A stretch of 62,543 bases of DNA, counting the filler, from Choristocarpus tenellus KU-1152 (lineage: Eukaryota; Protista; Phaeophyceae): NCBI GenBank assembly GCA_964200185.2. It is 9 parts of 9 records of this genome, joined end to end, with 100 filler letters (N's around TTAATTAATTAA, not from the genome) between each part and the next. Parts side by side here need not be neighbours in the genome. Positions count along the whole stretch, not along the records: positions 18,726 to 33,357 come from CAXNAD020001147.1; 8 more parts are not named here. One strand, given 5' to 3'. Shown in pieces: positions 3,405 to 29,680 of this stretch (the stretch's first letter is position 1; each line of letters opens with the position of its first letter). The position numbers were made by a program, and so were the translations under genes. Below the pieces are notes generated by a model. The model saw only the letters and a program-made list of their open reading frames with translations. It searched no databases and had not been told where the DNA came from.

Positions 3405-3494
3405 TTTTGTCTGCCATTGATCACCTTACTCGTTTTGTTGAGCTGAGCCCTATTCCAAATAAAGAGGCCACAACAATTGCTCGTACGCTGGTAG
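3401..3494 (+). mobile_element. Ty3/Gypsy-type LTR retrotransposon integrase core fragment
   Basis: Translates as AFLSAIDHLTRFVELSPIPNKEATTIARTLV, matching the rve pattern xxxDxxTRFxExxPxxxxxAxxxAxxL. Cut by the contig end. Confidence 0.75.
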
Positions 3495-3594
3495 NNNNNN
3501 NNNNNNNNNNNNNNNNNNNNNNNNNNNNNNNNNNNNNNTTAATTAATTAANNNNNNNNNNNNNNNNNNNNNNNNNNNNNNNNNNNNNNNNNNNN
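3495..3594. other. Artificial contig-joining spacer (44 N + TTAATTAATTAA + 44 N)
   Basis: The same 100-nt block recurs at 3495-3594, 7984-8083, 10826-10925, 18626-18725, 33358-33457, 37196-37295, 45811-45910 and 59806-59905. It carries stops in all six frames and truncates genes on either side. Confidence 0.98.
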
Positions 3595-4134
3595 GTGTTT
3601 TTTGACCTGTTGGGGGTGGTTGATTGCGGGGGGGGGGGATGAGGAGTGTGTGTGTGTGTTTTTTTGGTGAGATTCGTTTTTAAATGCTTAGGTCTGCTTT
3701 GTGAACGCCATTTTGGTTGTGTACTCCCGGCATGAATCGCGCGTTGTCTTCATTCAGCTTTCGAGATGGGGGGGAGGGGGGGGGGGGGGGGGGGGGGTAT
3801 TTTTTTTTTTTGAATTTTTTTTTTTTTTTTTTGGGGTTTTTTTGTTGGGCGCCCGTTTTGTTGTTTGCTCCCGNNNNNNNNNNTTTTTTTTTTCGTAGGG
3901 GGGAGGGTGTATGCGGGTTTGGGTGGTGTGGGTGTGTTTGTTGGTGGGGGGGGGGGGGGGGGGGGGGGGGGGGGAAGTGTAATTTTTTTTTGTGAAATTT
4001 TTTTTTTTATTTTCAGGGTTGATTTAGTGAGCGCCTGTTTGGTTGAGTGCTCCCGGCACGAGAATATTTCTTTTTATTGTGTTGCTTGTGTCCGTTACAC
4101 TTTGATGTAGATTGATGTTAATTGATGGTGGTAT

Positions 4135-4170
<36 letters not shown>

Positions 4171-4379
4171 GTCTCCTAGGGGGACTTAATTGGATTTTTT
4201 GGAAGTTTTTTGGGGGGGCAATGATGAATGCATTCTGAGTCCCTTTGGTAGTGATAAGAGATACGTTGGGAGATGTGGTTCTCTCCCTCTCATTCATATA
4301 TATTATTTTTTCAACTTTTTTTCTACTCTGGTCACTCTTTTTTTTCTTTCTTGTTTCAATATCTGTCAATATCTGTCAG

Positions 4380-6599
4380 GTTTACGATCGGAATGGAGTG
4401 GAATTGGCCCATTTTGTCAAGGGAGATCCCTACCTCAAGGTAATTCAATCTTTCTTTTGAATTATAGAAAAAACATCCCTGTTTTTTCTTTCTTATTTCT
4501 CTGATCTCTGCCTTAACCTTTACAGATCCCTCCTTTACAGATCCCTCCCCCCCTCCCACACACACTATTTCTTTAATTGAGTGATGTGCAGTGGTATTAT
4601 GCTATGTGGGTAAGTGGTCGTCTCTTACATGAATTTTGAAAATTTTAATAAATTTCTCAATGATTTTGATGGCATCATTCCCACTCTACCGCACTTGTGT
4701 GCGTTTTTGTGCGTTTTTTTTTTTTAATTTGGAAAAGGAATGGAAAGACCATTTTTTTCTTTTTAGCAAGTTCAACATTTTCTATTTATTTTTACTAGCG
4801 TATGGAATATGGTTTGCGATCATTAAAAAAAATATATGTTTTTGATTTTAAAGTCACTCTCAAGAAAAGGAAGGTGCTATCACTTCCTTCCCTTAAATAT
4901 ATACGCCTTGCAAGCTTGCAATGGCGCCTTGATTCATCCTCTTGAAGGTCAAAACAATAGTAAGAGCTAGTTCGTGTCATGTACTCTCCTCTCCTCTCCG
5001 ATTGTATGCACGTCTTCACCTGTGTTGATTATTTTATTATTTTGAAAAGAAATTTTGTAACTTTCCGAATGTGTCCATAGTGCACAATTGACTGCCCGTG
5101 TGGGGCGGAGGCAGAGAGAGAGCACTCTGTTTGCGTTTTCGAGTCTGCGTTTTCTTGACGCACGAGTTAGGGATAGGGATAGGGTTAGGGTTAGGGTTAG
5201 GGTTGGAAATCATATCCCTGACTTTCGGTGGGTTGGTTGAGGTTGGTATTAGTAAGAAGATTGATGATGTTGATATCGCGCATTCTCTCGTGCGTTCTCT
5301 CGTGTGTTCTCTCGTGCGTGTGTCTTCTGCGTGCTCTCTTGTGAATTGACCTGGACTATACGTGTCTTATTCTTTTTGTTTATGTATAATTTTTTTTACT
5401 GGGTTTGAAACAGAAAACCTAGAAATGATGTGAAAAGATTATAGTATTTTTATTGTGTGTGTGTGCATGTGTGTGTGTGTTTGTGGGCTCAGGTTATTTG
5501 CAGGCATTTATTTATGATGACAGGTACAATTATTATCAATAGCTTTGGTTCTAGTGACAGTTACACGTATGAAAGTATAAAATTATATTTTTTTTGGCTT
5601 TAGGTACCAATACACCGTACCATACTTTCTTCTGATTTTTGGTTAAAGGTTGAGACAAAAAAAGGTACAATGTGTAGAAATAGCAACAAGTCAAACCCCA
5701 TGGTATCGTCAAGTAGTTTTAAGTGAACAAGAGGGTGGGCTCCCCTTGCCATACTCCACAACCTAACCATTACTTGAGCCCTTCCGTACTAACCCTAACC
5801 CTAACCCTTCCCTCATCCACCCCCCGGTACTCTTTTTCATTTTTCTTTGGTTGTGTTTGTTTTTACTGTAGGATATGGCTCGTACCAAGGGGCATGTAAC
5901 CAGGGTCACGGGTGGGGACTGGCATCCTCACCTGAGGAACCAGGTGTTGACCTGCTCGATTGATGGTTCTGTGAGAACTTGGGACCTCAATGGCCCCCTG
6001 AGCTTTGACAATCTCATGTGCAAACAGGTTTGCATTCTTTTCTTCTTTTTTTTTTTTTGGGGGGGGGGGGGTAAGCAGTCGTTGATCTGCTGGGTGGTTT
6101 ATACCATGTTTAAGGGAGTATGGTACTGAGGTAGAGTCAATTGTAGTGTGATTGGTTGGTTGGTTACGGCAGTTGTAGATGCAGGGTTAGGGTTAGGGTT
6201 AGGGTGATCTGTTGACAAGATGAACATTTCTTTAATGGCAATGGTGATGGAGGATGTGTTCACCATTTTTACAACCTTTATATTTTTATTTATGATACTA
6301 GTAGTAATGATATTCTCATTTCTCAAAAATTGATTTTGTCAACTTGATTTTGTCTTGTCAACTAGCCTCACATGCCCCCTCCCCCACATGATGTCCATCC
6401 ATCTGTCCATTTCCCTCCCCCCCCCTCCCAGGTGTTGAAGTTGAGGTCAAAAAAGGGCCTCAAGCTTGGCTGTACAGCAGCAGTATATCAACCGGAGGGG
6501 AAGGGAGTGGCAGCGGGGGGACAGGATGGATCTATCCATCTCATCCCTCTCGACAAGCCTTTTGCAAGGGCAGATGTGGTTAGGGATGCTCATAAAGAG
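4380..6599 (+). CDS. WDR70: WD40-repeat protein WDR70 homolog, internal exons (partial)
   Basis: Phase-0 GT-AG exons 4380-4439, 5872-6027 and 6432-6599 give VYDRNGVELAHFVKGDPYLK-DMARTKGHVTRVTGGDWHP...TCSIDGSVRTWD...AAGGQDGSIHL. This matches the WDR70 signature DRxG...KGDxY..DMxxTKGH. Confidence 0.88.
5167..5203 (+). repeat. Interstitial telomeric repeat (TTAGGG)n with ATAGGG variants, in a WDR70 intron
   Basis: TTAGGGATAGGGATAGGGTTAGGGTTAGGGTTAGGG. Similar short arrays lie at ~5790, ~6184, ~47990, ~52036, ~52201, ~53100, ~53890, ~58311 and ~58840. Confidence 0.9.
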
Positions 6600-6783
6600 G
6601 TGGGAGGTGTTGTGGTGATAAAATATAGTATATTTTTATATTTATTGTCTTGGCAGTGGTTGGAGTTGGTGTTCCCCCTCCCTGAGCAAGAGTGTGCCTC
6701 CAAGTATCTGAGACGTTTGTGTGGGTAGGGTAGGGTAGGGTATGGTTTGGATGGNNNNNNNNNGAGATGGTTGGGGGGGGGGT

Positions 6784-6837
<54 letters not shown>

Positions 6838-9800
6838 AGCATTGACTTTGAGGTAGGGTTAAGATTCAGACAGGTGGGTGAGGAGGGAGTGGTGTTGGTG
6901 TCCTCCCCTCCCCTTCCCCTTCCCTTCCCAAGTACTCAAATTCTCTGAGAGAGAATTTGATTTGTGTGAATGGGAGTTCATTGAGGCGTGGTGTAGTTGA
7001 CAATATAATTATTTTTCATCTTCATTTTTATTATTGCCAATATTATTCTTTCATTATCATTTTTATTATTACCCCCCTTCCCAAGTATTTTATTCGGGTG
7101 AGAGGGTGTTGATGTGTGGTGTATTTGACAATATTAGTGTTACCTATGTTTAAAAGGGTTTGGAAAGGTGCTAGTGTTAAGGTTTTTTGTTGGAGGGGAA
7201 AGGGGGAATCAAATGATGGTCAGGTGTATGATCCTTTTGGGGGAGTTGGAGTAGTAGTGGTTCTTTGTTTTGAAATACCCAATCACTGTCCATCTTTCTT
7301 GTAGCCTTGTTGAGGCCATGCTATTGAATACTTGCAACTGTACTTGTTTGGATGAAGGAGTGTGATGTGATGTGATGTGATGTGATGGGTACAACCACAG
7401 CTGTACTCGGTGGTATATGAGTTTCCCAATTTAAAGCTTGCACTACAGTTAGGCTTTTTTGGGGCTACTGTGGTCAACCCTCCTTTGGCTGTGTGGGTGT
7501 TTGTTGTGTTCTTATCATTCCTGAGTACGATTTGCATTCCCTCATGTCAACCTTATCTTATTTTTTTATTTTGCATGTTCCATTGCATTACTTGGATAAT
7601 CATTTTTTTATTTTTATGATCCGCTGTAAAAATAACTTCTTTTTTTCAGAAAGCTTTTTTTTTTTCCTTTGTTGGGAATTGATAAATTTTCTAGAACATT
7701 TGTTGGTAAATGATGTTTCGTATTAGTGGGTATTTGTATTTGTATTTGTGTGTGTGTGTGAGAGAGAGAGAGTGTGTGTGCACAATGTGTGCAATGTGTA
7801 TTGAATCTGGTTACACCTTCCGTCGATACGACGATAACGCAACTCAATGGCATACAAACTCCCTGCATTATGTAACAATCCACAGGAGTCCAAACCCTTA
7901 CTGTAACCTCCCCCCCCCCCCCCCCCACAAAAAAAGATCTTTGTTTTTGTTTGTGGGTGGGGTTGTGGGGAGGGGGGGGGGGGNNNNNNNNNNNNNNNNN
8001 NNNNNNNNNNNNNNNNNNNNNNNNNNNTTAATTAATTAANNNNNNNNNNNNNNNNNNNNNNNNNNNNNNNNNNNNNNNNNNNNTTAAAATATACGCAAAA
8101 AAAAAAATTTTTTCCCGCAACCGTCTCCCCCTCCAAACCCCCCCCCCCCCCCCCCCAGATACTTTGGGTCAGATGCATTGACTTTCCAGCCTACCTCTAT
8201 ATGTCCACCCTTACTCTGTATATCTGTATCAGACCCCTTTGTTCTCTTGGATTTAATCAAAGTGCGTGTTTGTGTTTGGGGTATCTTGTCACTTTCAGGG
8301 ACGGGCTCTTTCTCTCACCACGCCAGGATTACGGTGCAACTCCATCATGGGCTCAGAAGCTGGACTGAGTACCTTTTGTGCAAATCGAAGAGTACTGTTT
8401 GGTGGTGTATACCAGTCGAAACAAGCTCTTCAGGTTATCATGAGAAGTGTATGGGTGTATGATCCTGAAGGTACTGAAATATCCAGTTGGGTATCCGATA
8501 AATGGAGTCTTTAGATTCGTTTCTCTTCGCTAAATATATTTTGCTGATATTCATCACTTGGGAGGCAAAGAATACAACAAAATCAACAAAAACAGTGTCT
8601 ATTTGTTTCTGTAAAGTTTTTCGCATACACCAGGAGATGTGTAGTTGAGAAAAAGAAGAGAGGGGGTCAAAGTACGTGAGAGGGGGTTGCCACCATGTTT
8701 TATGGGCCCCTGTGACTTTCTTGTGGCGATGATTTGGAGGACTTGGTCTGCAGGTGGGGTGTGTGTGCATTTTGACTTTTCTGTGGGTACACACAGTTTG
8801 CAGAAGCAAGTTGTCTCTATTGATGCCCTTTTCCAAATGCCTTTATCTTCTTACAGGGAAAGATGAAAAGATCCCTTTTAAACTCAAAATAGGGAAAACT
8901 CATCCCTCTCTCGGTTACTTTGTGACTCAAAGAAAAAAGAGGCCTACTGTGAAGAGACAAATGTACTTGAGACTGCTTCAATATTGAAACTTACCCATTC
9001 ACTGAGTATATAGAATTTCATGCAAACTTCCATACCTTTCTTCTGAATTGTTGTGGTGAGGGGAACATGTACCAATTTACAAGGACAAAGAATACAACCA
9101 TCAGTATCAACTGAGGCAGCTCAAGCAACAACACTGCCACCACCACTGTTTGCGGAATACTTTTTTCTCAATGCATTTCTCTTCTTGAGTTGATATTTCT
9201 AGTGTAACTATGTTTTCATCTTTCCTTTCATTTCCTTTGTGTTTCATGTGACATGCGATATTTTTTAGCTTCAATAGACTTGGTATGACGGATTTTTTGA
9301 CGGTATTTCGTGTATTATACCTTGGTTCTGTTGATTTCTCTCGCATTATAGATACAATACTGGGTTCTTTCTCTTCTTTATTCCTCTTCATTTTCTCCCT
9401 TTTTTTTCAGTGCTTTTTTCTTCTATAGCACTTGCTGTATCTTTCCAGTAGTGTGTGTTACCTGCTTTGGACTGCCTATTGACCCCGCAGCACGTCTGAA
9501 CGTGAAAAATAAGCACTCTATATTTCAATAAATATTATGATAGTAGTAAACAAACGTGAACAAAACAATATAAAAATATTGATACACTGATTTAAAGAAC
9601 AATATCTTTACATATATTATTCTACCCACTCACATTTTGTAGATGTCCTGGGGGGGACCAAGATGAACATATATATATCGTATATACTCGGAGTATATAT
9701 TTATTTTCCTCAAGTTCAGATTTTAAACTTCTTGCTCAACTTCTCACTCCATAGTTCCTATTTACTTCCATTACAAGGATTATGCCCACCTATTAATTCC

Positions 9801-10184
9801 TACTTCAAAGTACAGTGTTGCAAGGCATGGTTTTATGCACCACCAACACGCTCAGGCTCAGGCTCAGGCTGCATTGCCTCAATTAACTCGGTCATCTTTG
9901 TCCCAGGGTCCCAATGCTCAATATTCGGTATGGCATACCAGGTACCCAATGTATCTTCTTGACCTCCATTTCTTGCTTGTTATCGATCGTACCATATCTC
10001 GTGTCTCCTTAGCCTCCAGCTTCCATTTGTGTCGAAGGTGCAGCAGGTCCACTTGGTTGGGATGACGATGATGCTACTATTTTGACAGAAGCTACCACTG
10101 AGCGCATATAAGTATGACATTATATGATGATCGACCTCTTTGTACGAATATCTCAGTCGTGCCCGAGATATCGTTTGTTGCGAT

Positions 10185-15156: not shown

Positions 15157-18100
15157 ATGGTGACCATGACATCACTACGGCATTGGCTGGTGGTTGTCCT
15201 GTTTGCCATGGCCATGAACGTGGATAGGACCAACGCACACAATACCGATGACAATCATTGCTTTGAAGCCACTGTCTCAGAATCCTGCTCGACAACAGCA
15301 GGAGTGGATGCAGACGTGTGTGCCTATACTTGACTTCTTGGTGCAATTGATATTAATTTTGTTCTGTCCTGAGTGGTCATGTTTGCTCTCCTATACTTGC
15401 CTTCAATGCCACTGACTCAAGCTCTCACTTGTCCTTGGTGATCCAGTTCTTCTTTTGCTCGGATCGATACAGCTGGGCATGGTCCAACGACTCTGTGCAG
15501 CTACCAATCCATACCAGTGACTCCTTGTGCTTGGCCATGGACAGTGATGTGATAGATGGGCTCGATTCAAGTGAGTTTTGGACCTGGATAATCTTACTAT
15601 CTTTGCTCTTGATCTTGGTCTTTACCTTTGAGAGTTGATCCTTCTCCGCGTGGAACATTTGTCGTCTTCCACAGAGCTACTTTGACTCATTCCTGTGTGA
15701 TGAATTTTAGATTGTGCTTTTCTCCTTTCACGAGTCTCGTCATTTGACTCCAGATAGTCACAGCCAGCGTCACAAGTTATGAAACGTTAAATTAATATAC
15801 TTACTCTCCCTTACCCATTAGTACTATAGGGCAATGAGGCATTGGCCAAATGATCGAGACGCCGCTCTTCTCCTCTCTTTATTTCCCACTCTCTGTGCCT
15901 ACAGCCAAACTTATTGTGTTGGGAGGTTGTGTATCACCGTCTATCAGGTACTTCGGACCATGTCCTGACCTCTCCACAGAGACCAAGGTCTTCGATCCAG
16001 TCGAGGTAATTTTCTTTGGGCAACGAAAATAGCTGACTAAAATTTAGTGGTGAGCATGATGCTTCACGCCTTTGGGGGTACCATGCTCGTTGTGCGGCAC
16101 AATATCAACCCGTGTTTCTTTTCTTATTGATGCTTTTCTAATCTGATGTTAAACGTGGCAGCTCTCGCCAACCTTCACCCCAATCGGTGCCCTGTTCCAG
16201 GTGTGAGCAACTCGTTTTTTTTCGCTCTGATCCTACATGTGTTGTTTGCGACCTGTGGTGTGATAGCGATGAATTTGCAAGTGCTGCGCACAGATGCATA
16301 CATTTCGCCCACCTTGACGTCCAAACCGCTTCCCTTATTTCTGATGTTTGTTACATATGCTCGTTCTCTCTCTTGCGAGTAAGGACAAATTCACAGAATC
16401 GGAAGCCATGCCCAACTTGCGGTACAGGGCAGCAGCAGTTAATGTCTCAAATCACATCTACATGTTTGGTGGTCGTGATCTCGAGGACTCTCTTGTGAGT
16501 AATATGACACACTACCTACTCCAAATCATGCCTTTGTTCATTTACTTGATATTTCATGTATCCAATGCTTGATGTATTCCAGTATGTACTGCTAGGCTGA
16601 GTCACGGAAAAACTTGCAATGACGTGACATTCATCTACCCCCACCAACACCCCACAAACCTTGTGGTAACCCCCCTTCACTAGGTGTGCGGTGTGGACCG
16701 GTATGATGTGGTGACCGAAACATGGACAACTCTTGACTCCACACAGACTGAGAACTGTTTCTCAGACCACTGGGGTGTTGCCAATGACGATAACACTATC
16801 TTCCTTTTCGGGGGATGGAATGCTAATTATGAAGCACAAAACACCACCGTCATGGTTACTATTAATGGTGATGAGCTCTCTTTCTCGACAACTTCTCCTA
16901 TGATGCAGGTTTGATTGGCATGCTTTGATGTGTGAGTTGGTAGTGTATGGGTGTACTGTAAGGGTATGACTGAGATGATAACCAGTTGTGCACTGTCAAG
17001 CGAAACTTGTGTATTGTTGTGGTGCAGAGACTGCATTTTCTGGAGGACATTGTATGTAGTTGGTTGTATCTGCTCTTCACCTCACAAGGGTGCTTACATC
17101 TCACTTCCGAATGTTCCTTGACACACCCTGCAATTACAGCTGCAGCAGAGCATACTTTGGAAGTGCCTTGCGTGTGTTTTGTTCTTAACCAGTTGAAATG
17201 AGATTTGGGTTTGGGACTGTATGTACAGAGCAACACTTGTATTTTTTTTTTGGCCTGGCGAAAGCACTGGCATCACCCACTCCGTGCTGTATATCTTGGG
17301 GATCGAAGAGATAAATATTGTTTTTTATTAATGGAATGTTAGTCTTACGTAATGGAGTACTCTAGGTTACACATGCGCTAGTTGAGACTACCTCTAGCCC
17401 ATGCCTCAAAGTGCATAATCTTTTGAGGACTGTGTATGATGTAAGATAAACTCTCTGTCTGTTCATGATCAGACGGTAAGAAAATGACATCTCAGGGTTA
17501 GGGACTCAGCCCCAGACCTCCGCATTATGTCTTTGTGAATTATTTCAGGCTTGGGGATAGGGTTAGTTTTGAAATACATTTAATAGGCGAGTGTTGCTGA
17601 CCTCCACAACCTGTCAGTGTTAGACTGGTACTTGTAAGTAAATGTGTGGAAAGGGGGGGTGATTAATATGTGGCACTTCCATCCTTTGGGAGGCGTTTTC
17701 CTGGAAAGGATGTTGACTATAGTGTTGTCATTGCATTGTGTGTCGCTTACTGTAGTGCTGAGAAGGTACTTGAAGGAATATTTTCACCAATCAAATGACT
17801 TGCATTGTCACAGCGAGCATCTCGGTTGCGTTCATTCTGCAATATCCCTAACCTTATATGACCTCGCTCTACTGTGAATGGAACAAATGTTACTAAATTT
17901 TGTAGGGATACTATAGTAGTGCTGTGTGCTTTTAAGCTGCAGGAGCTTAAAACGGTCCAGGGTTGACCATAGATAGGCATGCGGAGTTGCAGGTGAAGAA
18001 AAACCTTATCCACTCTAGCTTGATTAGCCGATAGATATTAAGCACATCTTGAGGGGCAATCCATGCTAACGCCTCAAGGCCCCACGGCTTGTGAAGCTTC

Positions 18101-18516
18101 TAACCATTAGTACAATGTAGATACCTTTAAACTAGCTGCAAAATGTACCGTCACCGTCCAAGCTTTCAAGGATGACTATGTTCCCAGCCGGGTTCTCTAT
18201 TACGCCTCTTGGTTGGTAGAGACCTGCTTACTTCTCTCTTGAACTCCATTCGTGTGGCACAGAAATAAGGTCATCAGTCTATCCCTTACTCCCTCGCCAA
18301 TTCATCTTTTGTTCTGGTCATACAGAAACGTGGGGACCATGTATGCACACGGTTCCTTGACACTGACGATGTTTACTGTATGGGAGGATTCTTTGATGAT
18401 TCCACCAACTCAGCTGGTTACACTCTCCTTAGCAGTGTGGAGCATTTTGACATGGGAACAAAGGTTTGGAGTGCTAAGTCTCCCATGGTGACAGGGAGAG
18501 CTGACTTTGCTCTCGG
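15157..18516 (+). CDS. Secreted Kelch-repeat beta-propeller protein (5' part; truncated by contig end)
   Basis: Exons 15157-15317 (donor tentative), 15473-15570, 15905-16005, 16384-16494, 16684-16908 and 18326-18516 are phase-compatible. Kelch GG motifs are LIVLGG, IYMFGGR, IFLFGGW and VYCMGG, with the ...W....PM...R pattern. The N-terminus is hydrophobic (WLVVVLFAMAM). Confidence 0.85.
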
Positions 18517-19347
18517 GTAAGAGTAGCAAAATACATGGTAGAATTACATTTGTGATCCTTTTTTTTTGTTAGCCTATTGTTTCAGTAGTGGGATGTTATT
18601 TGCTGTGGAGGTGATGTTAGACGGGNNNNNNNNNNNNNNNNNNNNNNNNNNNNNNNNNNNNNNNNNNNNTTAATTAATTAANNNNNNNNNNNNNNNNNNN
18701 NNNNNNNNNNNNNNNNNNNNNNNNNCCTGCACCATCCTCAATTTTGAGAAAGACCTGTTTTTGGAAGGTGTCTTTCACACCACCCTCCATTTCTTTTCTA
18801 TCCTTACCAAAACTCAGCGTACCATATGTATTCTTGAAATCCCCCTCACGTTCACAATTGTCAGATTGCTTATAAATCTTCCCCCTTTTTGCTTGGAAAG
18901 AAAAATGAAAATGAGTTCGATTGTCCTCAAGAACAAACTGCGAAAAAGGTGGTGGGATCTGTGATAATGGATAGGAGGAGGAAACACTTTACGAGATATT
19001 TGTTTCTGTGAAACAAGAATTGGTGGAACAACTTAGGACAGTTGGCGGAATAAACCATCAGAATTGTTGAAAAGACCGATGTAGAGTTGGAGGAAAGGTC
19101 AATGCCAATCAGCGATATCAATTATATTATTCTAGGAACCGTGCCAGGATTGGTCCGACTTCGTACTTCAACATTAATGAAGTAACTCCTTGCAAAACAG
19201 CTGGACTGGTCTCGAAGCTCTTCATATCAAGTCACCGATCACAATACACTATCTGTCCTATATTAGTTCTCCAATCCCCGCAATGTTGCGTAATCACAGA
19301 CTCTCAGTCCATAAACGCTATTGTCTAGAATCCACAGTGGTGGGGGC

Positions 19348-22300
19348 ATGATGACAACCGAGGTAAGAAAGGAAAACCCCATGACCTTCTCTTGGTTTTG
19401 TGTACCTCCTTTACTCTGACCTGCGTGAGACATGTGACTTCTGGCTGAAACAGATCCTGTCGGAGGCTGCGAGGGCGATCGAAGCGGAAGAATCCTATGA
19501 AGTCCTCGGCCTACGATCGGGGGAAGCTAGGGCAGCCGGCGGCGAAGTCGTGCTGGAGGTTGCAGTACCGGCCACGATTGATGCAGTTAATGCGACCTTA
19601 CTGACACCAGTGCTTGGCACGGTGAAGAGACTGCTCGATACTATGAAAGGAGCCGCAGTGAAACGGAAAGAGGTAGTAGAGCTGGTTCATTTATGCGTGG
19701 CAATAGCAAGGTGCTTGATCAAGGGAGCGGAAATCAAATCAATGCCTCCGTCGATTAAGTTGGCTCTGGAGGAAATCAAGGATGAAGTGGAAGAAGTGGC
19801 TAGATTTGCCCAGACTTACGGTACGCAACGAAGATGCTGCCCACGGCTCTGCCTCCACTCGCATTACCTCGATACCGCCGCAAATCACAAGCAGAACTTA
19901 GAGAGCTTTCTTGACGCGATCGTGGCCAGGTTCGAGGTTGAGAACTACAGGGTCGTGACAGATGTTCCAGATTCGATCCAATCGAACGTTCCCAACCGTC
20001 CAGGCAGACTGGCAAATGTTCCTTCCTGGGCACCACTCCTCCCTAAAACATATGTTAAGCGGAATTCTCTGGCAGAACGAGTAATCCTGGACCTTAACAA
20101 CCCTGAGCACTCCGAGCCGCACTTTCTTTTAGGTATGGGAGGTGGAGGCAAGACTCTCCTGGCGTCCTATGTAGTGCGCGAAGAACGTGTGCGATCAATC
20201 TTCGAGGATGGCATTTTTTGGGTGCGTTCGCGACCAGAGGGAAAAGAATACCTTCGCAAGCTTATGACAGGGTCAGCGTATGAGCTAGCCTCAGCTCATA
20301 CGAACAGCCCTCATCAGTGTCCTCGTGAGTTCTCTGGAACTGAAGAAGTTGCTCGGCACATGTCTGAGGTCCGTGAAAGAAACGGGTTGAGGTGCCTCAT
20401 CATCTTGGACGATGTGTGGGATATCGAGGTTGTGAATGCCTTTTTCGATACAGGCTTTCGTCTTCTGGTCACCACCCGCCAGAGGACTGTGATTTCTCCC
20501 AAGTTTGGTATGCCGCCTACTGAGGTTGGAAACATGGCGATGGATGAGGCGCTGGAGGTACTGGGTAAAGCAAGCCAAGCTGTTGGACCACTTCCGGAAG
20601 CTGAGGCCAAGCAGGTGAGGACGTCTCCTCTCCCCAGTTCAAATCTCAAAGGCAAAGCGAGGGCGGACTACTGGTTCGTGGATCCATTATGGCAATGAGT
20701 GAGACTCTTCCCTGATTCGGATACACAATTAACCTGTTGTGTATGGGTTTTTCTTGTAGAAGGAACTGAGGAGAAATTGAGTCTATATGCAATACCTCTA
20801 CTTTCAAACACTTGGGGGTAGTTATTTCTGTGTGAGGTTTCACTGTGCAGTATGGAGCACTCTACCTTGAGACATTTTAGTAACAACAGGATAATGTGCT
20901 GATGGATGGGATATTGAATGGAAGAGTGGAACATTTTGTGGGATAGATGGTACATTACTCAGACACACCGGAGCTTCCAGCAAGGGCACATGGATCATAG
21001 TTCTCGTCTGCATGGTTCTTGATTAATTGTGAAATAATATTTTTCTGGGTAAAGCTAATAAACCCCCCACTACTTCATTACCAAAAACTAAAATCGTATC
21101 GGGAATTTGAGACAAACTATACGAAAGCTACATGTAAGCGAGCCCTGAGATTTTCTGAAAGGGAAGGAAGTCTGTTCATGTTAATGATGAGTGAAAGCAT
21201 CTAATTTGGAGGTCAATTTGGTCAATTTGACCTTTTGAGTTTTGAGTGCCTAGTTGAACTTTGTGCAATGTACAGCATGCTCACAATTGAAATGCAATTA
21301 ACCCCCCTTAGGAGGGTATGGTAGAAGAAGATCAGGTGTGAACACATTGTTAGCCGACAGCGGCCTCCACAACGCTCAAAATATACAAACCAATGGACAG
21401 TCATAGGTACCCTTAACTCAATACCCTCCATTTATGTGGTGTCATTGTGATTATTCCCACTCACATTATATGTGTATTGCAACCTACCATGATTTGTCTA
21501 GGGGACATGCACGAAATATCTTACAGACTAGTCAACCTTTTGGTGGGTAGTAATTGCTTGTGCTTTTCGATGTTTTTTGGGGGGGCCTTTTGCTCAGGGC
21601 ACTGTTAGCAATGTTTGGTGTGTTGATTTTGCATTACTCAATCCCTCATATGCTTAGTTCAATCCATCACCAACAACCCAAGAGCCCCTAGGGACCTAGG
21701 TCCTCGGTCTTAATGGGCAGGGAAGATCTAGTGACTGGTGAAAGTTGGTCACCAAGTTTTGACTTATTAATGAATTGCCTTACTATCTGCAGGTGGCTTG
21801 TGACTGCGGAATGAACCCTTTAGCCTTGAGCATGGCAGGCACGCTGGTAAAGGACCAACCGCTGTTGTCTACCTCTTGGCAAAGGGTACACATTGAACTG
21901 CAGAATGTATACACCAAGCTTCGGGGAAAAAAAGTGCCTCATGAGTTGACATATATTTTTTCTGTTTTGGATTTGAACTATAGCAATCTGCCAGAGGCCC
22001 AGAGGCTACAACTTCACTTCATGGCAATAATGGCGAAAGGAATCCCTGCGACATCAGAGATGCTAGCAAGCCTTTGGGACACGGTATGTGCAATTTATTT
22101 GTTATCTATGTTCTCAGGTACTAAGACACCTTGGTATTCTGGTATTAGATATATTGCTGTAATGTGTTTGTGTGTGTTATTGCTGACCTCAATACCTGTT
22201 TTCCACCCTAAACCTGTCACCCAGGATGTAACCAATGTACCAACTGGAACAAGGGTTTTGGTGGATCATTGCCTGCTGCAGGAGGTTGGTGTGGACTTTT

Positions 22301-25300
22301 GTCTCCATGATCTCGTGCTTGATTTCCTTGAGCTGACAATCAAGATGGATATCGCTAGTGTGGAAGATGCAATTTTGCGGCAGTCCCAGTACCTGGCCCG
22401 GTTGGGAGTTCTGTACAAGTATTCCAGTAAGAGTATCTGCGGTGGTCTGTATTCCCTCATTGCCCTGTGGAATGCAGTAAAGAAATATGATAAAGGGCTC
22501 CAGGTGGAAGTACACTACATGGAGAATCTTGAGGGTGTGACTGATCAAGACCACTGGAATCGAGCTGGCCAACTGCTTAGTGTCATGGTGAGATTTTCAC
22601 TTCGATGCAGAGAATGAATGAATCCACCCATAAGAGGCAGCAACATCCACTTGCTTACAGTTTATTTTTCATGTTGATAACCTCCTGATTGCTGTATGCT
22701 CAAATTTTACACAGGACATTTTCTCAGGCGCTGAGACGATGCTCAGGAAGGCCCTGGACATCACAATAGGAAAGGAGGGGGAATCACAGGCAGTAGCAGA
22801 AGGACTCAGCTGGTTGACGTCTGTGCTTCAGAAACAGGTGAACAAGGTTGTGGGTTGCTTGTGTTCATTAGTGTGAGACTATTCGTGTGTCCTATCGATT
22901 GCCCTTGTCCCCAGGATGAGTAAAGGCTAGGGTAAACCATAATAGTACATGATGAGTAACATGGTATACATGAGCATCAATTATAACTCTGGATGTGAAG
23001 GGAAGTGTAGTAAAAGAATACCTACCGGTTGCGGGGAGTTCCTCTCTCAAGCATTCTTGATATGTTAGAAGCTATCACTTTAATGAACTGAATTGTGTCT
23101 ATATCCTGACCTGTTAGCGCTCATGACCAGAAACATTTCCTGTACGTTTTGTAAGTGTAACTCTATCAAGTACCACACCAGGTGGTTCCTATTCCTCAAA
23201 GGAAATCTCTTCCTGCTTCTGTCATAAACCACCAAAATATGATGTGGAAGTTGTCTTGGTACATTTACTTTAAGTCTCTAATTATTCCTCAACCAGTAAC
23301 AAGAACATTTTCCATCTCCTAGAGACATCCTCTCATGAATTATGTACCTGATCATTCCTACTTTAGATGGGTTGTGTAGTAGATATCTATATATATATAT
23401 ATATATTCATATCCACAAAGGATTGGTGAGGGATATTTGAATAGGCGGGAAGGAAGGAAAAGTAGCTTCTCAGGATTTGCTTCATGTATTGAATGCAAGA
23501 GATTGAGTAGCATGATTGTTCTTCGTCAGTATCCTATACAATCATGCAGGGTTTTCAAAAGGGAGGTGTGGCGTAGTTAACCTTTCTTCAAGTAGTTTCT
23601 TGACGTTATTCACAGCTATTTAACATACTCCAGACATGCAAATCTACTCTGTAACTTGATCAAACAGGACACAAGGAGTGCGACAAATTTCACCCATTCA
23701 CCACATAAGTTACCTCAAGTATGTCTGCATTATTGAAGATAAATGAATATTCAATATTGAAAATATATAAAATATAGGATACATATAGATCTGCAGAGCA
23801 TAAGGTTGCATTTGCATATAAGACGGATATAAGCACCAAAAACTTGTTGGTATGTACTGGTAAGATGCGTGCATGACAATTTGTATATTGTGTATCATCT
23901 CACACAATTCCTCTTTGGGTGATTATGTTGACCATCTGCCTGCCTACCTATGCATAGCTAGGGTGGTGAACTTGTGTATTCTGTATTGTTAGATTGTGTG
24001 TTGTTTTGGATTTGCTCCACTGACATTCCAATGCACTGTTCCCTCATAGGGCAATTTTGAGGAGGCCCGTCCATTGTACGAGAGATGTCTTGCAATTTGG
24101 GAGAAGGTGCTTGGGCCAGAGCACCCAGATGTGGCCAGATCTCTGAACAGCCTGGCTTCATTGCTCAAGCACCAGGTAAGGAATGTATATTCAGGGAGTG
24201 TTGTTGTGGCTATGTTGTTGGCGGTCACCGAATGTGAGACAATGGACATATTCCTGATGAAGTGGGATGTAGGCAGGTGTGTGCAGCATAGAGTTGATAA
24301 CGGACGGAAGAAGCATATGAATGCTTGTGAATGCGTTGTTGGAAATCCCCTTCTGTGAAGACAGTGTTGGTGTGTACTGGTAGGATGCGTGCATGAGAGT
24401 GTAGATACTGTAAAATATGTTGTGCTGACCTTCTTTGAGAGATGGTGTTTGTCATCGTCCTATTTATTTATAGGTTAGGGTGGTGAACTTGTGTATTTTG
24501 TATTGTTAGATTGTGTGTTGTTTTGGATTTGCTCCACTGACAGACAGTACAATGCACTGTTCCCTCACAGGGCAATTTTGAGGAGGCCCGTCCATTGTAC
24601 GAGAGGTCCCTTGCAATTTGGGAGAAGGTGCTTGGACCAGAGCACCCAGATGTGGCCAGCTCTCTGAACAACCTGGCTTCATTGCTCAAGGACCAGGTAA
24701 GGAATGTACATTCAGGGAGTGTTGTTGTGGCTGTGTTGTTGGCGGTCACGGAATGTGAGACAATGGACATATTCCTGATGAAGTGGGATGTAGGCAGGTG
24801 TGTGCAGCACAGAGTTGATAATGGACGGAAGAAGCATATGAACGCTTGTGAATGCGTTGTTGGAAATCCCCTTCTGTGAAGACAGTGTTGGTGTGTACTG
24901 GTAGGATTCGTGCATGAGAGTGTAGATACTGTAAAATATGTTGTGCTGACCCTCTTTGAGAGATGGTGTTGGCCATCGTCCTATTTATTTATAGATAGGG
25001 TGGTGAACTTGTGTATTTTGTATTGTTAGATTGTGTGTTGTTTTGGATTTGCTCCACAGACAGTCCAATGCACTGTTCCCTCACAGGGCAATTTTGAGGA
25101 GGCCCGTCCATTGTACGAGAGATCTCGTGCAATTTGGGAGAAGGTGCTTGGGCCAGAGCAACCAGATGTGGCCTGATCTCTGAACAACCTGGCTTCATTG
25201 CTCCAGCACCAGGTAAGGAATGTATATTCAGGGAGTGTTGTTGTGATTGTGTTGTTGGCGGTCACCGAATGTGAGACAATGGACATATTCCTGATGAAGT

Positions 25301-26051
25301 GGGATGTAAGGCAGGTGTGTGCAGTACAGAGTTGATAATGGAAGGAAGAAGCATATGAATGCTTGTGAACGTGTTGGAAGAGTACAACCTTGATATTCAC
25401 TAGTATGGTGTGTGCTTGTGCGTTTGCGCAATTTATATGATTTGCTTTAATGCCAAACATATCTGGTGGCAGATAGAGTTTATTTGGCTGTATCTGTTGG
25501 TTTTCTTGCGGTGTGTTTTAAGTCTAGGTCATATGGGCACACTATTTTTTGGTTCTCTTTCATGTTGTTGATGATCGTTTCTTGAACAGTCGATTTTTTG
25601 TTGTAGTGTTGTTTGGATACGTTGCTATGCTATGGTAATACTCTGGGAGGATTACTTGATCAAATATCTGAGATGTGCAGGTGCACCATGTAAGTTTTTT
25701 TGTGTCACAGTGATTCAAATATGGTGCTTGTGAAGGAGGTTGCCACAAAATGCAGTAATTGAGCTTTATGGTGATATTGTGTAATTGGGGTTGTTACTGA
25801 CAATATTAGTAGTTCTCATTGCTACCCCGAAGCTTCCCATGAATGTGCAGACTAACGTAATGGTCTTTATAGTACACCAGTAACAGAGGGAGTGTTTTGC
25901 AGTTCTCTCTGTTCTTAGTCACCCACTTCTCTATCCTCTTTCCCTCATCTTACAGGGCAAACCACATGAGGCCTATGCCCTCTTCTTGCGTGCACAAGTG
26001 GTCTTGAACGAGGCTCCTGGTCCTGAAAATACACATAGAGAGATTGTTTGA
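19348..26051 (+). CDS. NLR-like protein: MLKL/RPW8-like four-helix N-terminal domain + NB-ARC + exon-encoded 42-aa TPRs
   Basis: Exons 19348-19362, 19454-20614, 21793-22083, 22225-22587, 22715-22837, 24050-24175, 24571-24696, 25087-25212 (contains in-frame TGA) and 25956-26051, all phase 0. Motifs: Walker A GMGGGGKT, Walker [25 protein letters not shown]-like CGMNPLAL and MHD-like LHDLV. TPRs read [36 protein letters not shown]. Confidence 0.92.
23844..25375 (+). repeat. Tandem array of three ~520-bp intron+TPR-exon cassettes
   Basis: Exon starts at 24050, 24571 and 25087 give periods of 521 and 516. The flanking introns are near-identical between units. Confidence 0.97.
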
Positions 26052-29000
26052 CAAAGGCTGGAGAATATGTAATGGTAGGATTTGGCAAGCCCTACGACTA
26101 AGTAAGAGAGTCAAGGGACCTCCTTCGTTACTGCATTTTGTTTCGTGTGGTAAGCTTGCTGTTATGTGCGATGAGCAGTAGATCAAGTGGGATTGGACAG
26201 GGTTGACAAAATATTGTGGGGTTGGGCTTGCAGTAACACTGATTTTTTTTTGCATTTTGAACTTTCAAATGTATTTTTGGCGACATTTCTCAAATATCTA
26301 CCTCTATTCACACAACATCTGTGAACTAGAGTCCCCTGAGAATGCCAACACTGCTATCCAGAGAGGGCACACGCAAGTGTGACATTTTATTGGTCTTTCT
26401 GGTCAAGATGTATTAAAACCTTTGAAGGCTGGAGGGTTCATGCACTCGTGCTATCTAAAAGAAAACTGAAGTCAACACAGTGAAACATCCTACAGCTAGA
26501 TCCTTGCATGCAACATTCCCATGTGGAACTTATCCAGGATTCTTACTATTATCTTGGGTACATGTTGGAACGATATGATAGCATATGGTAGAGTGATGAA
26601 CTTCCAGGGCATCCCATGCCAGGAACATACGTGTTATTCCATCACACATTTGAAGCTTGGAAGTAGGGATTGGCAATAGTTTGGTGGCTTGATATTTTTA
26701 TGACATCTTGGAGATTTCTGCCAATCGGATATTGGGGAGGTCGACAGGTCTGCATACCTGAAAAAGATGTATGTGACATTATGGCTAAATACATCTTATG
26801 TTGTTTGTTTATTTTTCAGAATACGATACTAGCGCCTTCCTTCACCAGTTTATATATTTTAATGCCCGCAGACATTTTTCAGATGTTGTCATAGGGGGGA
26901 TAAGAAGGATCGCAGCACTTCTATCTACTCCTCTGATTCGTACATATTCTACCCTCTGTATTGTGTTTTCCCCCTCTGAATAATGCTGGGTCTTAGATCG
27001 TTGGAAGAAATGTTTGAATGGGAGTTGGAAGAGCAGAATTGACATACAAGAAGGTGAGGGGAACCAAGACTGTCTGTCTCCTCCCAAGTATTGTACACAC
27101 ATCGTGTACCATTCATCATGTAGTTCTCGTTTTATTCCCACTGATATTTGCACATTCGTGCAGGAAAGAGAGAAGCAACATACAAGAGAACAGATAGACT
27201 GTTCATCATAGTGCTTGGATATCTTGAATAGTTTAATCGGATGTATCATGCACAGATCAGTGACTAGTAGTTACCTGACTCAGCAATTCGTCCTTGTGAC
27301 GTTTGTGGACTCTTTCCGTTCATCCACTATTCCCCGCTGAATTGGGCTGGTCCTCCAAATGAAAGGTTGTTCTCTCCTCTCTCTGTTGCCTTCATATATG
27401 TTTTGAAGCCTTTGTTGTAGGTAAGTATCAACAGCATTCAAATCATCACATAAATATTTTTATATGCCTGATCTACTCGCACGTAGACGTTTAGGATGCT
27501 CATATTGGTATAAATCATTTTAGTGTTCTACGTAATTTTTGTTTGATCTCGGGTTTTCTTTCCTATTTTCTCGAGGGGTGAAGCCTGATATAAGAATATA
27601 TATATATATATATTGTTCAATCTAAATCTCTGCAATGTGCAAGGTCAGATTGTACCATGGATTTGTGATAAGCAAATGTTTTTTACAGTCCTCCTCTGCT
27701 TGGCATTACTCGGAACGAATACAGGGAAATTATGTTTGTGACAAGATCTACCACAGGTAGACCAGCAACTCCTGCACCAATTATAGATATACAACCTTTG
27801 TTTCACCCAAGGTTTCTATAGTAGCGTTTACTTTCCAATATATACAGGGCCTTCTGGGAGGGGCTGTGGTCCCCTCATACGTTCCATGTTGAGGCGAGTG
27901 ATAATTACAATTACTTCTTGGCTACCCAATATAATATAAAAATAAAGAGTTTAAATGTGTCGTACCCCTCAATGTTCGGTAAAATCAAATGTCCCACGTT
28001 TATTTGACATGTCCCGGTCCGTGTCCGCCGAGCAGACCATGTCAAACATTTTCTACCTTGTCGGGACCATCCGACCATGTACAACCAGATTCGAACATGG
28101 CTATGTCCATTGCTATCGAGAGTTTCAAGTTGACTGGGCAGAGACACACCCTGGGGCCATATGGCCGACAGTGGACATGTTAACTGCCTGGCCCAGTGGA
28201 AACCCTTGTTATATTGCCTGGATGATTAACACAAAAGGGGATCCCATATCTAGAGAATTGTCAGTATAATATTTCTTTGAAAAACTTGCTGCTTTCCAAA
28301 CATCATGACTAGAAATGCTCAATGTATATACAAAATGCAGTTGACTTTAATTTCTTCTTAATACACAGGATCTCTTGAATTTAGAGTCGCTCATTGAATC
28401 CCAGAGTGACCTTTCCTAGGAATGGAGTATTTTTGCCCATACTGATCAGTGTGAGGGGGACAAATTGGAATCTTCTCATGCGCAGTGTGCTTTTTTACTG
28501 GTGAGAGAACCTTCATGAAATGCGGTCCAGTCTACCACCTTGTGCGCGAGCGCGCGGATTTTTTGCATTTCAAGGTCAACAAAAAGCACTGATATTTCTT
28601 GTGGACCTACTGTACTAGCCTCACTCTCTTGTTGAGACACCTAACATTAACCTAGATGCTAAACAAATTATCTTCCTATTTCGAAACAACCCCAATGCTA
28701 TAAAAAAATCAACACAACTATAATCTTTCTAAAAAGATTACGTTCAGGGACAAAACACCTGCTCCAGTTCTCAAAAACGTCATTCACTAAGTTCGATGGT
28801 TTTCTCTATATTAAAGATGTCAAAGAGTTTAGAAATAGTTCCAAAAACTACTTGGTGGCTAATGAGGCGTTGTGGTGGTGTGTTTGTCCTATATGTTCAA
28901 GGTAAACCGCAATGTCGTGAGGGGGTGAACAATACGGAACATGAGGACAGTCACTTTCATGTTTTGCTTTCCTCACGAATTCTGGATTAACATTCATTAT

Positions 29001-29680
29001 TCTTTATTTGCATTCCACCTAATCTACCCCTCTGTTGTAACACCACTTGTGACCAACCAGCGCCGTCCGTCCCTGTGTCACTGACTTCCAGGCACCAGCC
29101 TATCCCGTCATCAACCAGTGCGAACCCCTTTCGCCACTGATTTACGGAACACCAACCATATGAAGGCGTGGAATGCAGTTAATCTAGCCTTCCGAACCGT
29201 TTCTATCTTAGGCCCTATTAAGGCAATGTGGTGGTGTGTTTTTCGATGATGGGGGTGAATAATACTGAATATGAGAATAGTGACAGACCAGTTTTGGAAG
29301 TATTTCTAAACTCGTTGACATCTTAAATATGGGGAAAACAATGGTTTTAGTCCTTAAAGAGGCTTAAGAACTAGACCAAGTCTTTGTTCGTTGCTCAACG
29401 TGATCTTTTTTTTGTATGACGATATTTGTGTTGATTTTTCTATAGTTGAAGAATCAATACCACCACTTACTAGTACAACTGTTTTTTTCATACAATTCTC
29501 CCTTAAAATCGAACAAATCTATTCTAAGCTCTTTGTGTATATGAGAATATACACCATAACCGTTATTAATTTCTGGATCAACTGCCATATTTTTTTTTAT
29601 TCTTAATTTCTGAACTATGCTCATCCCTTAAGTACCATATTTGTTTTACCAAGATCTGGAATTTCTGAATATCCTGACCA

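Follow-up and report, generated by a model that had tools for sequence, protein, structure and literature searches.

Gene structure and TPR cassettes

The window analyzed in this study (62,543 nucleotides of joined parts, filler included) contains a candidate immune-receptor gene of Choristocarpus tenellus with a predicted four-helix-bundle, NB-ARC, and TPR layout, which is transcribed and spliced. The public model of this gene, CAM9263687.1 (696 aa), lies on CAXNAD020001147.1 (14,632 bp). It was 100% identical to the gene in a protein search, and its C-terminus falls exactly at the TGA of cassette copy 3. The features are summarized in Table 1. The assembly (GCA_964200185.2) was built from short reads, with an N50 of 6.8 kb and an assembler k of up to 127. 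Reads came from three runs of one organism in one study, probably one clonal strain. X1 and X2 are DNA runs; X3 carries no RNA label and was classed as RNA-like because its contigs skip modelled introns at GT..AG. The read evidence consists of summary tables of simplified contigs, which are unable to separate isoforms, and X3 depth is not a basis for ranking isoforms.

Table 1. Features of the receptor gene, with positions counted along the window
Feature	Position	Strand	Evidence
Probable first coding exon, 5 codons, phase 0	19348..19362	+	Inferred; ATG and GTAAGA donor
Exon 2, 387 codons, putative four-helix bundle and NB-ARC	19454..20614	+	Pfam, 12-relative alignment, AlphaFold
Exon 3, remaining NB-ARC (GLPL-like region), phase 0	21793..22083	+	Pfam NB-ARC E=0.0024; X3 joint 22082>22224
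Exon 4, MHD-like motif (LHD) region, phase 0	22225..22587	+	X3 spliced joints both sides; within CAM9263687.1
Exon 5, divergent 41-aa TPR-like, phase 0	22715..22837	+	X3 spliced joints; no Pfam match
Older partial copy, 3' half of cassette intron	23845..24049	+	77% overall, last ~90 nt near-identical
Cassette exon 1, 126 nt, open	24050..24175	+	Sequence, Pfam; X3 joint to next cassette
Cassette intron 1, 395 nt	24176..24570	+	Sequence
Cassette exon 2, 126 nt, open	24571..24696	+	Sequence, Pfam
Cassette intron 2, 390 nt	24697..25086	+	95.7% identical to intron 1
Cassette exon 3, now last coding exon, TGA 25174-25176	25087..25212	+	Sequence; X3 joint to last exon
Partial third copy, 5' part of cassette intron	25213..about 25380	+	Sequence
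Former last coding exon, TPR-like, TGA after 31 codons	25956..26051	+	X3 joints; paralog comparison

Exons 2 to 5 are four open phase-0 exons. All 651 codons upstream of the array are open, and the P-loop, Walker B, and LHD motifs are intact. The NB-ARC domain of exon 2 spans residues 207-372 (Pfam PF00931, E=3.8e-13, 49.7 bits at a cut-off of 23.5), and its P-loop, Walker B, and RNBS-B were found intact in an alignment with 12 relatives. Ectocarpus and Hapterophycus proteins are among the brown-algal relatives, which are 41-52% identical. When exon 4 was used as a homolog query, the gene itself was the sole match. Searches covered the spliced model one exon at a time, and CAM9263687.1 served for identity look-ups and for single-exon regions. 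The TPR domain is C-terminal in the same transcript, as judged from TPR_10/TPR_12 matches and a spliced contig leading from exon 2 to a cassette. The start of CAM9263687.1 (exon-2 Met64) was probably placed too late, because the relatives also align over exon-2 residues 1-63 and an upstream 5-codon exon has a good donor (19348-19643). This annotated start falls within the first helix of the predicted bundle.

Residues about 44-165 of exon 2 were predicted by AlphaFold to form four long helices (pLDDT 82). The structural matches were human and mouse MLKL (Z 10.9, rmsd 2.8 over 117, and Z 10.3), AtMLKL3 (10.3), MLA13 (9.4), and the CC-R of NRG1 (9.2); unrelated helical bundles reach equally high Z against this domain, and the MLKL-like scores lie below about 13, a level that helical bundles reach through their common arrangement. 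Foldseek returned no significant match for the domain. Its family profile matched mouse MLKL (E=0.0055), and Pfam and Atlas gave weak MLKL_N and RPW8 leads. An MLKL/CC-like four-helix bundle is a plausible assignment for this modelled domain. Brown-algal NB-TPR proteins reportedly carry an N-terminal four-helix bundle, according to the abstract of a survey.

The coordinates, borders, and phase of the three 126-nt cassette exons agreed with the original prediction. Each is preceded by AG and followed by GTAAGG, with phase 0 at both ends. The exons are 92.9-95.2% identical to each other, a likeness that at such length and level far exceeds chance. The claim that the exon had been copied along with its ~395-bp intron also held, given the 95.7% identity of the two introns and the partial intron copies flanking the array; the unit copied in tandem is thus exon plus intron, about 520 bp. 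Tandem Repeats Finder missed the array (period >500).

Each exon had further been thought to encode exactly one 42-aa TPR. Pfam TPR_10 positions 16-42 fall on exon residues 1-27, and an exon therefore comprises helix B, the linker, and helix A of the next TPR. The period is split across two TPRs and only two of the three exons are open, so this part of the prediction had to be dropped. These repeats belong to the 42-aa kinesin-light-chain type, the best of them matching PDB 3nf1 at E=1.2e-08. Repeat type and fold are shared with kinesin-light-chain-type TPRs (TPR_10/TPR_12), whereas architecture and exon structure differ. A protein search with cassette 2 yielded generic, mostly bacterial TPR proteins, with no Choristocarpus paralog among the best 120 matches; TPR_10/TPR_12-type repeats are also common in bacterial STAND and CHAT proteins. 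BLAST with the cassette intron gave no match in the second Choristocarpus gene described below or in the loci of other species.

An Rfam search of the piece gave no matches. A segment of ~750 bp at 28698-29445 is delimited by nested imperfect inverted repeats (38 nt at 82%, 51 nt at 88%) and is possibly an old MITE-like element.

The stop codon in copy 3 and a probable collapsed unit

Codon 30 of copy 3 is TGA, where copies 1 and 2 have AGA and AGC. Copy 3 additionally carries L14R and H25Q, both at positions conserved in the exons of 41 relatives. The original prediction, which treated all three cassettes as intact TPR modules, had missed this stop, at which the protein would end. The gene is well represented in X3, with spliced joints between exons 3 and 4, exons 4 and 5, exon 5 and a cassette, two cassettes, and a cassette and the last exon; the pieces listed contained 0 mismatches. 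Private 31-mers of copy 3 occupy 25131-25212. X3 depth in the copy-3 bin is accounted for by exactly 79.0 letters, counted from 25131, of the contig leading into the last exon, and this contig therefore spans codon 30. X3 has neither a T>A change nor any difference listed at 25174. Arithmetic on the contig tables thus indicates that the TGA is present in the spliced mRNA. From the same tables we infer that cassette 3, TGA included, is part of the major mRNA, which would give a protein of about 764 aa as assembled and about 806 aa with the fourth unit proposed below. The possibility that the TGA is a sequencing error was rejected on the read evidence.

With 36 nt between the upstream TGA and the last junction, the stop would evade junction-dependent decay, provided that brown algae follow the usual 50-nt rule. 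The exon at 25956-26051 is 3' UTR whenever cassette 3 is included, and the extent of the spliced contig suggests that the transcript runs on to about 27216. Compared to a paralogous exon in X2, read solely from listed differences, the last exon has two extra bases and its frame is reduced from about 47 to 31 codons. The 3' end of the gene is no longer under coding constraint. A whole helix pair with its linker is completed before the stop, which comes at nearly the repeat position where the old last exon ended (29 vs 31 aa).

In both DNA runs the flanks of the array matched the assembly with 0 differences. Within the array, a 134-nt contig of X1 (24109-24242) had 2 differences from unit 1 at 2.2x flank depth, and a 409-nt contig of X2 (24499-24907) had 8 differences from unit 2 at 2.0x flank depth. 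The private letter of cassette 2 at 24660 had about single-copy depth in X1. When mosaics of unit-1 and unit-2 letters were enumerated, 10 fitted the counts, of which just one also explained both ends of the X1 contig. This mosaic has unit-2 letters at exon sites 36, 38, 39, and 66 and intron site 54, and unit-1 letters at exon sites 90, 101, and 121 and intron sites 13, 37, 114, 126, and 147; 21 of its 31-mers are missing from the assembly. One extra mosaic copy predicts multiplicities of 1.9 and 2.3 (observed: 2.2 and 2.0). The modelled insertion creates a collapsible exact repeat of 272 nt, whereas no exact match between assembled units exceeds 64 nt.

According to these summary tables, a fourth, mosaic cassette was probably lost from the assembly. 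It likely sits in this array between intron 1 and cassette 2 (order 1-M-2-3). Unequal crossing-over would be expected to yield just such a unit, with a copy-2 front and a copy-1 back. Once the mosaic is counted, sites 66 and 101 show all four letter combinations (four-gamete pattern). The presumed collapse of copies by short-read assembly is likely, as indicated indirectly by the doubled depth and the one fitting mosaic, and the presumed recombination between units is supported by the mosaic and the four-gamete pattern.

The DNA runs also hold a paralog ~10% diverged in exon 3 (21843-22378) and a paralogous last exon that is ~15% diverged and has a longer frame (25949-26052), neither of which was found among public proteins. 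Several more cassettes elsewhere in the genome were seen in the reads, with related intron ends and exons too diverged to align (23941-24919).

Relation to known receptor systems

Domain matches, relatives, and the published consensus agree with the predicted membership in the brown-algal NB-ARC-TPR family with Ectocarpus-type exon modules. In Ectocarpus, 126-nt/42-aa TPR exons occur in 13 of 24 NB-ARC-TPR genes; the loci show local duplications and nonsense-inactivated exons, and roughly one in five is a probable pseudogene (Zambounis et al. 2012, PMC3341825). The mechanism was left open in that study, with somatic recombination proposed (PMC3341825). The C. tenellus gene shares the order of NB-ARC followed by TPRs, one period per 126-nt phase-0 exon with the published Ectocarpus consensus, duplication within the locus, and nonsense exons on the coding strand. 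It differs in that whole introns are 96% identical, that the nonsense exon seems to be retained in splicing as the terminator instead of being skipped, and that the host is placed in the Discosporangiales.

Among the relatives fetched, the number of 126-nt TPR exons ranged from 3 to 18 (L001, 18; L003, 3; L004, 5; L006, 15). L006 is a second Choristocarpus gene, CAM9160206.1. L007, from Ectocarpus, has a long exon series that includes one stop-carrying exon. Between-unit intron homology was 82% over 125 nt in L003 and 72-92% over parts in L007; none was found in L001, L004, or L006. As such homology is partial or absent in relatives, the C. tenellus array represents the young extreme of a known process. 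The model in L007 (Ectocarpus sp. 12, 2155 aa) has its 126-nt TPR-like exons in two blocks (3417-9984 and 15348-22702), and an intronic, stop-carrying TPR remnant without acceptor lies at 19662. The 18 tandem exons of L001 (10847-19052; metagenome contig ERZ6864208) are without detectable intron homology, and several of them have GC donors in place of GT. An intron-free form of the repeats also exists: in a related NB-ARC-TPR gene, a single uninterrupted exon encodes seven 42-aa repeats (L008, 5293-6174).

Teng et al. 2023 (Plant J 114:246, PMID 36738111) surveyed brown-algal NB-TPR genes; as presented in PMC11378527, they favour alternative splicing and point out that no report of a somatic recombinant locus exists. 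Brown-algal ROCO-LRR genes likewise have one repeat per exon and show intragenic recombination and splice variants (PMC3341825, PMC11378527). The first two features resemble the present array, whereas 72-nt LRR exons, a GTPase domain, and inverted exons in introns set ROCO-LRR genes apart; no inverted exons were found on the minus strand of the C. tenellus locus. In the fungal NLRs HET-E/HNWD and PaPlp1, repeats are 80-100% identical, with repeat exchange, mosaics, and length change, and weak high internal conservation in brown-algal receptors has already been pointed out (PMC13449251). The C. tenellus repeats are similarly at least 80% identical (93-95% at the nucleotide level). Unlike in HNWD/PaPlp1, the repeated unit includes an intron, which accounts for three quarters of its length. 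Allorecognition, population polymorphism, and hypervariable codons under selection are features of the fungal system; the C. tenellus reads probably represent a single clonal strain.

Interpretation of the array

On balance, we favour a working, shortened four-helix-bundle NB-ARC-TPR receptor candidate whose sensor changes by unequal crossing-over, and consider this reading rather likely. Its TPR sensor was lengthened recently by tandem copying of the exon-plus-intron unit. Misaligned units may then recombine, by unequal crossing-over or gene conversion, and could have produced the mosaic fourth unit that the assembler presumably collapsed. Phase-0 borders would keep the frame through gain or exchange of units, and the predicted protein would end after helix B and the linker of the last repeat. 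Activation of STAND/NLR proteins follows an established scheme. By analogy with it, ligand binding by the TPR stack may lead to nucleotide exchange and oligomerization of the NB-ARC domain, which might expose the MLKL/CC-like bundle for signalling or cell killing. We know of no brown-algal NB-ARC-TPR protein with a known ligand, pathogen link, or protein-level evidence, which counts against this interpretation, and lesions in both copy 3 and the last exon also fit decay.

The main alternative to a working receptor is a gene that is still transcribed but in early decay. We regard this young pseudogene as a distinctly less probable explanation, though one of real weight: the sensor would decay from its 3' end, and the duplications would be passive by-products with no role in specificity. 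The TGA, L14R, and H25Q at conserved positions of copy 3 speak for it, as do the last exon, frameshifted relative to its paralog, and the small number of cassettes (3-4 vs 15-18 in L006 and L001). Moreover, 5 of 24 Ectocarpus loci are probable pseudogenes (PMC3341825), and neither variable sites nor exons, the latter relative to introns, show a significant excess of change. However, the long open frame before the array with its intact nucleotide-binding and LHD motifs, the good representation in X3, and a stop that spares whole helix pairs at nearly the old terminal position argue against decay.

No test for diversifying change reached significance. Amino-acid changes among the copies were not significantly enriched at variable positions (P=0.07-0.26), and changes in exons were not in significant excess over those in introns (P=0.27). 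Codon 30, the second most variable position in the exons of the 41 relatives, is different in all three copies. The proposal that the array generates new binding specificities thus found no supporting test, given the lack of significant enrichment at variable positions.

Two further readings appear improbable. In one, copy 3 corresponds to the "inactivated exons" of Zambounis et al. and is normally skipped, and the array is combinatorial by alternative splicing. Every border being in phase 0, near-identical splice sites, and the splice variants known for brown-algal ROCO and NB-TPR genes (PMC11378527) are compatible with this model, as is the fact that copy-2-specific sequence is not visible in X3. 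However, the sole cassette-to-last-exon joint among those listed runs through copy 3, and the absence of copy 2 may stem from contig simplification or filtering; it was for that reason rejected as proof of skipping. In the other, the array is a recombination hot spot in an early-branching brown algal order, with rearrangement, possibly mitotic inside a single clonal strain, that is frequent enough to create new TPR combinations, and with the nonsense codon as a movable terminator. This is equally doubtful, as the mosaic is indicated at ~1 copy per genome in both DNA runs and looks fixed instead of like a somatic minority. If true, this small and fully resolvable locus would lend itself to examining the hypothesis that brown algae diversify receptors somatically. 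That the three units are an artefact, with alleles or paralog pieces joined in tandem, would fit a short-read assembly with an N50 of 6.8 kb and an array not spanned by any contig, but is very unlikely, with exact matches between units (64 nt) shorter than the largest k, a spliced cassette-to-cassette joint, private letters of all three copies seen or implied in the reads, and flanks free of differences.

The architecture and the diversification hypothesis have already been published (PMC3341825; Teng et al. 2023, as covered in PMC11378527). The known picture is unchanged, and the array favoured here as part of a working receptor is an unusually young example of a known system. The exon-module NB-ARC-TPR design is present in two genes of Choristocarpus, and the Discosporangiales diverged before other brown algal taxa; the design is therefore probably as old as the brown algae. 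In this very young array, the copying mechanism is still readable from the introns. Unequal crossing-over suffices to explain it, without a dedicated recombinase, and the array thereby bears on the question of whether exon shuffling in brown algae is controlled or passive.
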